Assembly (NCBI GenBank): GCA_964035545.1
Contig: OZ037769.1
Span: 3,577,929 to 3,641,928, forward strand
Direction: 5' to 3'
Source: Bugula neritina
Lineage: Eukaryota > Animalia > Bryozoa
DNA: 64,000 bases
Both the position numbers and the translations under genes were made by a program. The notes under the pieces are model-generated. The model was given only the letters and a program-made list of their open reading frames with translations, was not told the origin of the DNA and ran no database searches. Position 1 is the stretch's first letter. Each line of letters begins with the position of its first letter. Shown piece by piece: positions 27,650 to 63,599 of the stretch.

Positions 27650-30600
27650 ATGGCGGGTGGGTACCCGACCCAGCCACCCCCCACCTATGAGCAATCTACT
27701 GGGTTTGCCCCAAAAACATTTGCAAAGCCTGGGACAGCTGAAGCAGGCTATTCCTCACCCAGTTACTATGGTCCCACTAATCCAACTGCACCATCAATTG
27801 CACCACCACCTGCACTGTCACCCGCACCACCACCTGTGCCACCACCTGGTAATGCAACCTATCAACCAAACAACGAAGGACCTCAACTTAAGGTAATTAA
27901 TTGATCAGTTAATTTTTTACTTTAATTGTATTGTTGCTGATGACGGCCTCTAAAACAGAATGCTACTATATATTTCTTTTATGCTGAGTAAATTTGATAA
28001 AACTTGCAGTTATCAATAAATTGTGTATTAATTCTTATTATCAGCTTGACAACTTCGCAACCTTTTGTTATAACTCAATTTTCTTTTATTGCATAGTTTA
28101 AATAAAAAACTAGTTCCTTTTTACTTTATGATAAGATTTTGTTATCGCATACAATTATGGGTCATTTTACTTAATTTATTACACACTCGAAATCTCCAGT
28201 TTTAGCTATTTTGCCCAATTTATCTGGTAATGTATATGGATTTTTGTTCATAACTAATAGCATATCAATAAATACAACTAAATAGTCAAGGTTATTTTTA
28301 ATTTTGCTCAATTTCCTATGTTTTTTCTAATTATTTAGCTAGTTTGGATTTGTGGACCGTCACATATTTTGTGACGGTCACAGATATAAAACATTTAACA
28401 CATGGCGATGCCGGCTGCTTTATTGTTGGGGAATCCCTTCCCAGCCTTTTCTGTCCTACATAATTAGAACCAGCACATAAAAATACCACGTATAGTAAAT
28501 TTCAATGAATCTTGAACAGACTTTACTGTTGGGTCATAATTTGCTGGTGTACTAAATGAAATAAAATGAATATTATGCTAACTGTCAAACATATTTCAGA
28601 ATAACAACAATTTTTTGCTTTGCTAACATGTAAAATAATTACTCCCACCGGGTTCAAACCACAGACCTCCGGCTTGCATGCAGGTGGGCTAATCAATTAC
28701 GCTACAGGGGCTGCTGGGTTAACACAACACTATACACAACACTTTGGTATAATATGCTGTTTAACTTAAATTTATTTCTTTAGACTGTACAATAACTGTA
28801 CAAAACAAGAAAATATAGTGACCTTGTAAGCTGTAAGATTTAGGGATTAAAAATATTAAATTTTCAAAAAATATATATATATATATTTTTTACAATAGTT
28901 CTATTAGCACCAGACAGTATTTTTCTGCTGTGTCTATTTTAGCGAGCCCAGAACATAGCGACATGGTGGCATAGGGCTTCATTTATTGCTTGCATCCTAT
29001 TCTTCCCACTTGGGATTCCAGCAGCCATATTTACATACAAAGCCAAAAAGAGTGCAAAAAGTGGTGACATGATGAATTACTTGAAAAATATGGGCATCGG
29101 TTCTCGCTTAGCAGGAGCTGGTATTGGAGTTGGTATATCTCTCACTTTGAATATTGCCTTTCGGGTATATTCTCTTCTATTTTCTGCTTTTAGTTACATC
29201 ATTTTATTAAAATAAAAATATTTGCTATTTGTTGCTTTAATTATTTTACTTATTTATTAATATTATCATATTTTAGCTTCCATCTTGGCGCAAGGATGAA
29301 AAATATAGCAAACTACCGCCTTGGACTAGTAAGTGTTGAACCAAGGTGTAATAATAATTCTTTTCAACTGCTTATGACAAACATATTCCAGAACAAATTT
29401 AGAGTGCTTTTAATATTCTTTAAAACTTGTGATAAACCATAGTGTGCCACTAAGTTTTGAAATGCACTCTAAGTAAATCATATTCTATAGCTTATTGCTT
29501 TGTAATTCAGGTTCATATACTAGTAAGTGTGTGCACATGATGTATTATAGTATAAGTAGAACTGCTCTATCTAAAATTTTGTTTAAATGTATTCCATAAT
29601 ATATTGAAGTCGTGTAATAAAACAGATTTTTAGTACATATAATAAGTTAATTTGATATGGTTTTGACATGGAGTTAGGCTATCATGTAGGTATCATACAA
29701 TGTAAGTCTAATTTAATCACCTGTCCATTTTACATAATATTTTAATAAGTATAAAAATAATTTTTAGTGTGAAAATCTTTTTTAACTTTATGAACAGAAA
29801 CTACAATAAACAGTCAAAGTTGAAGTATAATTTCCTAATCACTTCTTGCATGTACCTTAAGCGACCATTGCCAAAACATTATTATACATTGATGATATAT
29901 AGTGGACACAAATCACTTAAATTTATAATACTTGACTTTTGTCAATAACATATTTTTATTTAGATTCGGGAATCTCAATAGGATGTTATTATGATGACAT
30001 GCAAAACATTCTTTCTGAAGATTTCAAAGATTTAGGGAGCAGCTCCAGAACTGAATGCGTGTCTTATTGCGCTTTCCAAGGTAAGTTCCACGTTCATATA
30101 AACATTCAGCTTAGCATATAGAGATATACTTGTGTGTTGCGGCATCTTATTATTATATAATGCAATGAATGTTATCAGCTTTTCACAATATTACGAAAAT
30201 GTCATCAGCAGCAAGAAATCGAAAATCCCAAACTAGTTCAGGACATGTTTGCGCAAAATTTATTATAAAACAAAATTTCCTAAACATGCGACTCTTGATT
30301 TGTAGATATTATAAGCTAAGATATATAGGTATACATTCTATTATATATGAGTATTCTAATACTGTATAAATTAAGTGCGTCAAAAATTCTTTAAGATATC
30401 AGTACTTTATACAGAAACAATTGTTTGGCGTTGACACATAACAATCAGCACCAGAGTGTATAATAGAAAACAACAGCTGATATCTTCTGGCACACTGTAA
30501 ATAAATTCTATTTTTTACTGAATATTTGTGAAATAGGAATCACTTTAATTTGCAGGATTTCTGTATGCCGGGCAGCAAGAAGAGACGCAATGTTACTGTG

Positions 30601-63100: not shown

Positions 63101-63599
63101 TTAAATGCAACGTTGAAACAAATTCTAGAATTAAAAAACCATGTAAAAAAGATTAATTGAGTACACATTTATTATGCAATGTGAAGTTTATATGGTATTG
63201 AAACTTGAATTTCTAAATTTAAAAAATTGCATCTCATCAAATAATGAAGCTCAACATAATTACTAAAAAGCAAGCCCAGTGTGAAAAATATAAAAAAAAT
63301 GTAATACAGGCCTATAATATAACTGGTTAAAATGAATTAATTATTACTTTCCATAAGAATTTAATAATTAATGTATAGTATAACATGTATTTGATATAAG
63401 TAAATTCTGACATCTGTTTTTCTCCTAGGCTATAGCTATGCTGGACTAGAGGACTCAAACAAATGTTATTGCGGGGACTCTTACAACTATCAGGCGGTGA
63501 AGTTGGAGAATTACGAGTGTGACTCTTATTGTTCTGATAAGTCATATGGATGTGGGGGAGATAACAATCAAATCACTATATACAACACAAATTATCTAG
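60144..63599 (+). CDS. Gene E: PPxY/YATP-repeat N-terminus + CD225 + at least 1 WSC domain; intact so far and probably continues past the window
   Basis: Exons 60144-60395, 61406-61627, 62047-62140, 62508-62621 and 63429-63599 are phase-consistent with no stop. WSC: YVGCFYN...CLSNCSFSG|YSYAGLEDSNKCYCGD...CDSYCSDKSYGCGG...IYNTNYLG. Confidence 0.85.
60436..60640 (+). mobile_element. tRNA-derived SINE copy in a gene E intron
   Basis: Family match; position shared with gene D. Confidence 0.75.
61745..62020. repeat. Long, nearly pure (CA)n microsatellite (~265 bp) preceded by (CG)n
   Basis: Seen directly. The matching site in gene D (~54905-54928) has only a short CA tract. Confidence 0.97.

Follow-up and report, generated by a model that had tools for sequence, protein, structure and literature searches.

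A tandem gene family joining a CD225-type membrane domain to WSC domains in the bryozoan Bugula neritina

Within a 64,000-nucleotide (nt) stretch of the genome of the bryozoan Bugula neritina (C5:3577929-3641928; this whole stretch is referred to as the window, positions 1-64,000), we identified a tandem array of genes in which an exon encoding a CD225-type membrane domain is followed by exons encoding WSC domains. The CD225-WSC fusion is real, as established by a spliced message from a sibling lineage together with a conserved gene structure; the architecture is new, its parts are known, and as far as seen it is restricted to the B. neritina complex. The array comprises five plus-strand paralogues, designated A to E, of which two are intact (A and E), one is frameshifted (B) and two lack the WSC part (C and D). 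The assembly (GCA_964035545.1) was generated by the Darwin Tree of Life from Plymouth material and spans 216.00 Mb, with nine large chromosomes (PMC11480708); our genome-wide profile searches covered its 216,009,554 bases on 321 contigs.

Gene structure and the spliced join

The initiation codons of the five genes are situated at 27650 (A), 36058 (B), 43471 (C), 53274 (D) and 60144 (E), all on the plus strand, exactly where a first-pass annotation of the sequence had proposed five same-strand paralogues. Searching the window with the exons of gene A by tblastn recovered five CD225-type exons on that strand, at 28943, 36582, 44519, 54588 and 61406, along with related first exons. The window has a base composition of 31% G+C, the genes are spliced, and in all five a Pro/Tyr-rich exon 1 with a PPxY-type motif precedes the CD225 exon.

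The structure of gene A was delineated by running profile searches exon by exon and by deriving the frame from exon-length arithmetic and exon-wise translation. Its 11 exons are separated by introns that are all of the GT-AG type, and their lengths (243+222+52+117+168+105+168+129+135+90+161 = 1590 nt) yield 529 codons followed by TGA, an open frame with a chance of approximately 3e-19 at 31% GC. The uninterrupted frame previously described for this gene was therefore confirmed, its length being 529 codons plus the stop in place of 530 residues. Exon 1 (27650-27892, donor GT at 27893) encodes a Pro/Tyr-rich tail of 81 codons, predicted to be cytosolic, with 22 prolines and a PPTY motif at residues 10-13. 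Exon 2 (28943-29164, phase 0-0) encodes the CD225 domain, in which two hydrophobic segments flank a basic loop (K+R 6, D+E 1); it was assigned by hydropathy, family alignment and a Pfam CD225 match (E 5e-4, 20.6 bits) lying under the gathering cut-off of that model (PF04505, 27.1 bits). A juxtamembrane linker exon of 52 nt follows (29277-29328, phase 0 to 1), placed by its AG/GT sites and by frame, and its analogue in gene B was confirmed by the spliced contig L001 described below.

Four WSC domains, each encoded in two exons, complete gene A: domain 1 at 29964-30723 (exons 29964-30080 and 30556-30723), domain 2 at 30931-31493 (exons 30931-31035 and 31326-31493), domain 3 at 31690-32237 (exons 31690-31818 and 32103-32237) and domain 4 at 32635-33340 (exons 32635-32724 and 33180-33340, with TGA at 33338-33340). 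All eight exons are in phase 1-1. Domains 1, 2 and 4 contain 8 Cys each at canonical spacing and domain 3 is a short form with 6 Cys, so that the ectodomain holds 30 Cys; the tail has 0. Compared alone with the Pfam WSC model (PF01822, gathering cut-off 27.8 bits), the second-half exons of domains 1 to 4 scored 15.7, 32.9, 27.8 and 31.6 bits. The anticipated series of one CD225 and four WSC matches was thus recovered in part: CD225 was found under its cut-off, and three of the four second-half exons reached the WSC cut-off by themselves. The WSC counts proposed earlier (four in A, two in B, at least one in E) agreed with ours, E having one domain within the window and one beyond it. The intron within domain 3 carries a long (AC)n microsatellite of ~126 units (31821-32073). 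A tRNA-derived element suspected in the first intron was dropped, ARAGORN having made no call there.

A profile of the five CD225 exons, searched against 1.84 billion representative proteins, returned 78 matches, four of them below 1e-10. Among the 20 of these 78 that were scanned with Pfam (P0001-P0004 and 16 longer, weaker matches), WSC was present in P0002 alone, a protein of 358 amino acids (aa) with a CD225 match of 25.7 bits, under the cut-off, and two WSC domains (Pfam WSC 82.1 bits). P0002 is encoded without introns on L001, a 1314-nt Logan contig from run SRR4020085 of a sibling lineage. Genome-wide, L001 matched gene B only, in six collinear blocks at the predicted exon borders with 85-94% identity. 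Being intron-free and collinear with the exons of gene B alone, L001 represents a spliced copy of the gene B orthologue from a diverged lineage. It is either an mRNA contig or a processed retrocopy, and in either case it derives from a spliced message joining CD225, linker and both WSC domains. The proposal that CD225 and WSC belong to one gene was thereby supported, as both are joined in one open reading frame at the predicted junctions.

Gene B itself consists of six collinear exons with two WSC domains. Exon 1 (36058-36255), encoding a tail with LPSY and PPTY motifs, is collinear with L001 1-413; the CD225 exon (36582-36821; Pfam CD225 36.0 bits, over the cut-off) matches L001 410-652 at 91% identity; and a Tyr-rich linker exon (37594-37675, 82 nt, phase 0 to 1) corresponds to L001 653-731. 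WSC domain 1 (38064-38449; exons 38064-38177 and 38283-38449) is frameshifted, and WSC domain 2 (39027-40216; exons 39027-39116 and 40035-40216) ends with TAA at 40214-40216. Both the linker exon and the frameshift were revealed by comparison with L001: the first codon of the exon at 38283-38449 is 1 base short (AAG/G TTT here, AAG/GA TTT there), and the base missing at 38283 breaks the frame.

Furthermore, the architecture was present in a second assembly, that of Virginia B. neritina (GCA_010799875.2), where the locus L002 (VXIV02002970.1, 4004-7588) carries CD225 and two WSC domains. The NCBI automatic model at this locus, P0001 (148 aa), ends after the CD225 exon despite the two WSC domains downstream; public annotation thus hides the architecture. 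Transcripts ending before the WSC exons had been named in advance as a sign of two separate genes. In these sibling-lineage and other-assembly data, the spliced message of L001 continues through both WSC domains, and the model that does stop early, P0001, has WSC lying downstream. L002 is 85-89% identical to its best Plymouth match, copy G, and either paralogy or a cryptic lineage is possible.

Within reach of the protein searches, and judged by sequence, P0002 appears to be the only protein with both CD225 and WSC. When used as a query in a protein database search, either whole or as its WSC region, P0002 matched solely itself; a search of the ESM Atlas with it gave no usable match, and in a metagenome scan the CD225 profile picked up no more than two short, weak matches. 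A full-text literature search found nothing relevant pairing CD225, dispanin or IFITM with a WSC domain, nor bryozoa with a WSC domain, in line with the earlier remark that the architecture was not known from characterised proteins. To our knowledge, CD225 is the sole folded domain of the characterised CD225 proteins. Ensembl models for GCA_964035545.1 may already show the CD225-WSC architecture.

Family members, copy decay and selection

The family was mapped with a CD225 family profile and self-built hidden Markov models (HMMs) of WSC half-domains over 254 kb of the cluster and a second site. Its CD225 exons number 21, with 19 at C5:3.607-3.818 Mb and two at C5:0.26-0.27 Mb. The number of WSC domains per gene is four in A, H and O-U, two in B, E-G and K-N, one in I, and zero in C, D and J. 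The order from CD225 to WSC, the strand and the phase are repeated in ~19 of the 21 genes as well as in sibling-lineage DNA. A tree of the CD225 exons resolved two clades (support 98/99): the window genes A-E group with F, G and T, and the second clade (H-S and U) keeps a CC-x-LPLG motif, its CD225 exons passing the Pfam cut-off at 28-38.5 bits. Genes with two WSC domains pair a first domain similar to WSC1 of gene A with a last domain similar to its WSC4 (shared endings), indicating that inner domains were dropped, a loss that phase 1-1 exons allow in frame. All WSC exons being in phase 1-1, whole domains can be gained or lost by unequal crossing-over without disturbing the frame (4, 2, 1, 0), and these symmetric exons make the young tandem array a clean case of domain-number evolution by exon deletion.

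Genes C and D illustrate the decay of the WSC part. In gene C (43471-44740), exon 1 (43471-43746, with PPSY) and the CD225 exon (44519-44740, 18.1 bits) both have open frames; they are followed at 45054-45881 by two remnants of WSC sequence, 45054-45140 and 45780-45881; both are decayed and interrupted by a stop, and they resemble the last WSC domain of gene E. Gene D is 89-97% identical to gene E, and 97-98% identical over exon 1 and the CD225 exon, both of which are open (53274-54809; exons 53274-53525 and 54588-54809; CD225 26.2 bits). Its downstream part (54954-55528, plus strand) comprises a linker with an in-frame stop (54954-55047), a remnant of the WSC1 first half with indels and a stop, and a deletion junction at ~55524/55528. 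The 2.5 kb deletion, equivalent to 62619-65095 of E, removed all WSC exons except the damaged first half of WSC1. Between 57136 and 58890, the gene D unit has ~1.75 kb of extra sequence compared with the otherwise collinear E unit.

Gene E is intact, with two WSC domains. It comprises exon 1 (60144-60395, with PPSY), the CD225 exon (61406-61627; Pfam CD225 24.2 bits, DUF4190 30 bits), a candidate linker exon of 94 nt (62047-62140, phase 0 to 1), which is 99% conserved in copy F, and WSC domain 1 (62508-63599; exons 62508-62621 and 63429-63599), which has support from L005; the second domain lies past the window end, with the stop at extended coordinate 65079. The intron after the CD225 exon of E contains a long (AC)n/(CA)n microsatellite of ~132 units (61756-62020). 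Exon 1 of C (43545-43640, 3.2 copies), D (53348-53413, 2.2 copies) and E (60218-60283, 2.2 copies) contains a 30-nt minisatellite within the coding sequence that specifies a YATPGSVQAG-like decapeptide, and the Virginia-assembly model P0001 has fewer copies of the decapeptide; the length of the tail consequently varies between copies along with the number of repeats.

Between genes A and B, an orphan second-half WSC exon was detected in inverted orientation (34056-34301, minus strand; 8e-9 with our own WSC HMM, and 29.1 bits in the Pfam genome scan at C5:3612053-3612181(-)). The CGG of the family is replaced in it by RGG. As neither a first half nor a CD225 exon nor any other partner exon was found for it, an inverted duplication probably left it behind as a relic.

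Subsequently, we quantified selection on the copies. Genes E and F, both intact, differ by a synonymous divergence (dS) of 0.17, with a ratio of non-synonymous to synonymous change (omega) of 0.12 overall and 0.11 in the WSC part. Between gene B and its L001 orthologue, dS was 0.18; omega lay at 0.2-0.4 in individual exons and at 0.46 when all WSC codons were combined, with the frameshifted exon of B standing apart at 1.07 (4 synonymous versus 16 non-synonymous changes). No positive or diversifying selection between duplicates was seen in the comparison of E with F. The low omega values indicate that the intact copies are conserved proteins, and that turnover proceeds via copy gain, truncation and loss and not via rapid amino-acid change. 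The first-pass annotation had likened the gain and loss of copies to immune gene clusters; the turnover itself was substantiated, three of the five window genes being disabled, but the diversifying pattern of many immune receptors was not (omega 0.12 for E vs F).

Orthologous DNA from a sibling lineage displayed the same organisation. Two JGI metagenome contigs, L003 and L004, are collinear with member T at C5:0.26 Mb with 80-88% identity. Downstream of their CD225 exon, and in the same orientation, lie no fewer than three WSC domains, represented by three second-half exons and by first halves detected for two of them. We considered whether the locus was hyper-divergent, in the manner of an allorecognition locus, relative to the JGI lineage. 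This was rejected because a neighbouring C2-domain gene is equally diverged: compared with its orthologue on the JGI contig L028, identity amounts to 94% over the exon and 83% over noncoding sequence. L003 and L004 are thus ordinary orthologues from a sibling species and not hyper-divergent alleles.

WSC and CD225 sequences also occur outside these genes. At extended coordinates 207885-216554 and 245132-248651 (L019-L023), WSC runs of four domains (plus strand) and two domains (minus strand) had no upstream CD225 in the fetched DNA, and these runs may represent members of the family whose anchor has diverged or is missing. Throughout the genome, WSC is massively expanded, with at least 149 exon matches from 257 candidates, including clusters at C3:15.15-15.9 Mb, C4:23.06-23.08 Mb and C8:5.81-5.89 Mb that are mostly without a nearby CD225 exon; several WSC architectures exist in this genome, the dispanin-anchored form being one of them. 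Conversely, seven CD225 exons above the Pfam cut-off at C4:17284419-17308522 have no nearby WSC matches and appear to be plain dispanin genes in tandem.

Domain identity, predicted topology and fold

The CD225 exons of genes A to E scored 20.6, 36.0, 18.1, 26.2 and 24.2 bits against the Pfam model, of which only B exceeds the cut-off; the DUF4190 model also matches. Judged from these profile scores, CD225 membership holds at the family level and appears borderline for A, C, D and E. In the alignment of the five exons, W9, F21, P22, G24, I25, A28, G41 and D42 are invariant. Two hydrophobic segments, the first of them with a Pro/Gly turn, span approximately residues 5-32 and 54-74 of the exon, and the loop of A, C, D and E contains 5-6 K+R versus 1-3 D+E. 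The window clade (A-G and T) has a single Cys or none at the juxtamembrane CC palmitoylation site. The CC motif marks the IFITM subgroup and not the Pfam CD225 family.

Likeness to known CD225 or dispanin proteins (IFITM1-3, PRRT2, SynDIG1/PRRT1 and TUSC5) extends to two hydrophobic segments, a basic loop, a conserved G-D and a Pro-rich N-terminus, here predicted to be cytosolic, and the likeness to IFITM3 includes a PPxY near the N-terminus. Two features set the Bugula proteins apart. Known members stop a few residues past the second helix, whereas the Bugula family adds 95 to ~380 residues of disulfide-rich ectodomain; and where known members have the CC-x-LG palmitoylation motif, the window clade has FFPLGIPAA.

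No signal peptide was found at the N-terminus, as the first-pass annotation had stated. Its further proposal, that a CD225 topology would place the WSC domains outside the cell, fits what we observed: the Cys-free PPxY tail, the basic loop and the Cys-rich C-terminal part, with 30 Cys in gene A, are all consistent with an orientation in which the N-terminus is inside and the C-terminus outside (N-in/C-out). By the positive-inside rule, the basic loop would be cytosolic, and the second segment would then exit the cell as a type-II signal anchor, rendering a signal peptide unnecessary. From these sequence features we infer that the family proteins are N-in/C-out, so that the WSC domains would face the extracellular space or the endosome lumen. 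This topology has been shown for IFITM3 and PRRT2.

A [PL]PxY motif occurs in exon 1 of 18 of the 21 family genes, and the tails are otherwise unalignable between subgroups. Gene A has PPTY, gene B has LPSY and PPTY, and C-G have PPSY; other members carry up to eight PPGY/PPEY copies. PPxY is a ligand of the WW domains in NEDD4-type ligases, and IFITM3 uses one.

An AlphaFold2 (AF2) prediction for P0002, based on the family alignment, modelled the CD225 part as a helical hairpin with a predicted local distance difference test score (pLDDT) of 79-95 and was poor elsewhere (pLDDT 51). The AF2 model of a WSC domain (P0002 residues 264-358) had a pLDDT of 85 and a predicted template-modelling score of 0.76. 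In a Foldseek comparison, this model matched Kremen1 (5fws/5fwv) and yeast Wsc1 (7pz2) with template-modelling (TM) scores of 0.77-0.80, a root-mean-square deviation of 1.5-2.1 Å and a probability of 1.00, and the best match by sequence in the PDB for the WSC domain was likewise Kremen1 (E 8e-5). With Kremen1 and Wsc1 as the nearest folds, a glycan ligand is not implied. Carbohydrate binding by WSC has been shown for some fungal WSC proteins only.

Proposed role and competing explanations

We propose, with what we judge to be roughly an even chance of being right, that these are single genes of a Bugula-lineage family of ~21 members encoding a type-II-oriented binding receptor of the surface or endosome, with NEDD4-type ligases sorting it by way of its PPxY tail. 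The protein would comprise four parts: a Cys-free, Pro/Tyr-rich N-terminal tail, cytosolic and bearing at least one PPxY/LPxY motif; a CD225 anchor in which a basic loop connects a re-entrant hydrophobic segment to a single transmembrane helix; a short aromatic linker; and one to four disulfide-rich WSC domains, extracellular or endosome-luminal. The multivalent WSC array is predicted to bind a polymeric, probably carbohydrate, ligand, and WW-domain NEDD4-type ubiquitin ligases would dock on the PPxY tail to control uptake and turnover. Such a layout would reproduce the logic of a type-II lectin receptor from different parts. The analogy to type-II C-type lectin receptors (ASGPR, DC-SIGN and Dectin-1) is functional only: these also combine a cytosolic tail containing a sorting motif, a signal-anchor and an extracellular lectin-like domain, and they occur in tandem clusters. 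Their domains are unrelated to those described here, the Bugula anchor being a re-entrant plus transmembrane dispanin and its ectodomain WSC (PAN/apple-like) in place of C-type lectin domains.

Several observations weigh against this receptor proposal. Among the window genes, A, C, D and E have CD225 exons that fall under the Pfam cut-off, the N-in/C-out topology is one that we infer, and PPxY easily arises in Pro/Tyr-rich sequence. The nearest WSC structures include the protein-binding Kremen1 and the mechanosensor Wsc1. Moreover, the spliced join was seen in the sibling-lineage contig L001, and that contig (SRR4020085) may be a processed retrocopy rather than an mRNA contig. A full protein is impossible from three of the five window genes (B, C and D).

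Among the alternatives, a tether to the cuticle or matrix that doubles as a mechanosensor fares best, albeit as an unlikely one. On this account, the WSC array reaches the chitinous cuticle or extracellular matrix that the epithelium secretes, and the anchor and tail report strain, much as yeast Wsc1 senses cell-wall integrity. The WSC model fits the Wsc1 mechanosensor domain as well as it does Kremen1, the very large WSC repertoire of the genome is consistent with a structural or matrix role, and the strong purifying selection on intact copies suits a housekeeping ligand better than a pathogen. The yeast Wsc1-3/Mid2 proteins present a membrane-anchored WSC fold towards an extracellular polysaccharide layer, as the Bugula family would. 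Wsc1, however, is a type I protein in which a signal peptide and an N-terminal WSC precede a Ser/Thr spring, the transmembrane helix and the C-terminal tail, whereas the Bugula proteins have a predicted reverse orientation, one to four tandem WSC domains and a dispanin anchor. They have no Wsc1-like Ser/Thr-rich spring, the linker being just 17-31 residues, and the frequent loss of WSC (none in C, D and J, one in I) would be odd for an essential tether. Kremen1/2, an animal cell-surface receptor as the family is proposed to be, offers a different comparison, resembling it in WSC sequence and fold; unlike the Bugula proteins, it has a single WSC between Kringle and CUB (PDB 5fws), is type I, binds the protein ligands Dkk and LRP6, and has no CD225.

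Rather doubtful is the bolder idea that the family represents a new class of lophotrochozoan pattern-recognition or capture receptor. WSC binding would here be coupled, through an oligomerising dispanin anchor and the PPxY tail, to ubiquitin-dependent endocytosis or to IFITM-like endosomal remodelling; the CD225-only copies C, D and J, themselves blind to the ligand, would be partners with which the oligomer is tuned, and the fusion would serve as a natural experiment that fixes the long-debated N-in/C-out topology of CD225 proteins. An immune role of the family is possible but unsupported. If the ligand were microbial, the family would constitute a new kind of invertebrate recognition receptor, in the host of a bryostatin-producing symbiont.

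The first-pass annotation had suggested a glycan-sensing receptor or an IFITM-like effector or restriction factor; these ideas draw on the family names only and are unsupported. A restriction factor, in which CD225 alters endosomal membrane fusion and WSC recognises a virus or microbe, strikes us as improbable. Membership in the CD225 family, a tandem array with copy gain and loss, and the likeness to the IFITM3 tail of an N-terminal PPxY with an acidic or polar residue after it speak for such a factor. Most CD225 proteins, PRRT2, SynDIG1 and TUSC5 among them, are nevertheless not antiviral, the window clade is without the double-Cys palmitoylation motif, and the duplicates display no sign of diversifying selection (omega 0.11-0.12).

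It is very improbable that the window copies are mostly functionless pseudogenes left by tandem duplication. The frameshift of B, the stop-cut WSC remnants of C, the deletion and stop in D and the orphan inverted half-exon are what a decaying array would leave, but gene A maintains 529 open codons over 11 exons, E and F are intact under an omega of 0.12, and the orthologue of B is intact and constrained in the sibling lineage. Finally, we can hardly credit that adjacent CD225 and WSC genes share a joint frame by accident or read-through: the early end of P0001 would fit this, but that locus has two WSC domains downstream, L001 joins both parts in one open reading frame, order, strand and phase recur across the family and in sibling-lineage DNA, and the WSC part, whose first exon opens in phase 1, lacks both a separate start codon and a separate signal peptide.

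The receptor proposal bears on proteins of wider interest. CD225 proteins (IFITMs, PRRT2 and SynDIG1) are medically important, and here CD225 anchors a large ectodomain; a disulfide-rich domain placed after the second helix would provide an independent argument for the long-disputed N-in/C-out topology of IFITM. WSC, which has few understood animal roles, is set here in a membrane context new to it, and in a phylum where functional genomics is almost absent.

Two further features were noted on the plus strand of the window, upstream of the array. The terminal exon of a C2-domain gene lies at the window start (55-396). Two open frames at 16881-18000 are candidate Myb/SANT-type DNA-binding repeats, as judged by eye.

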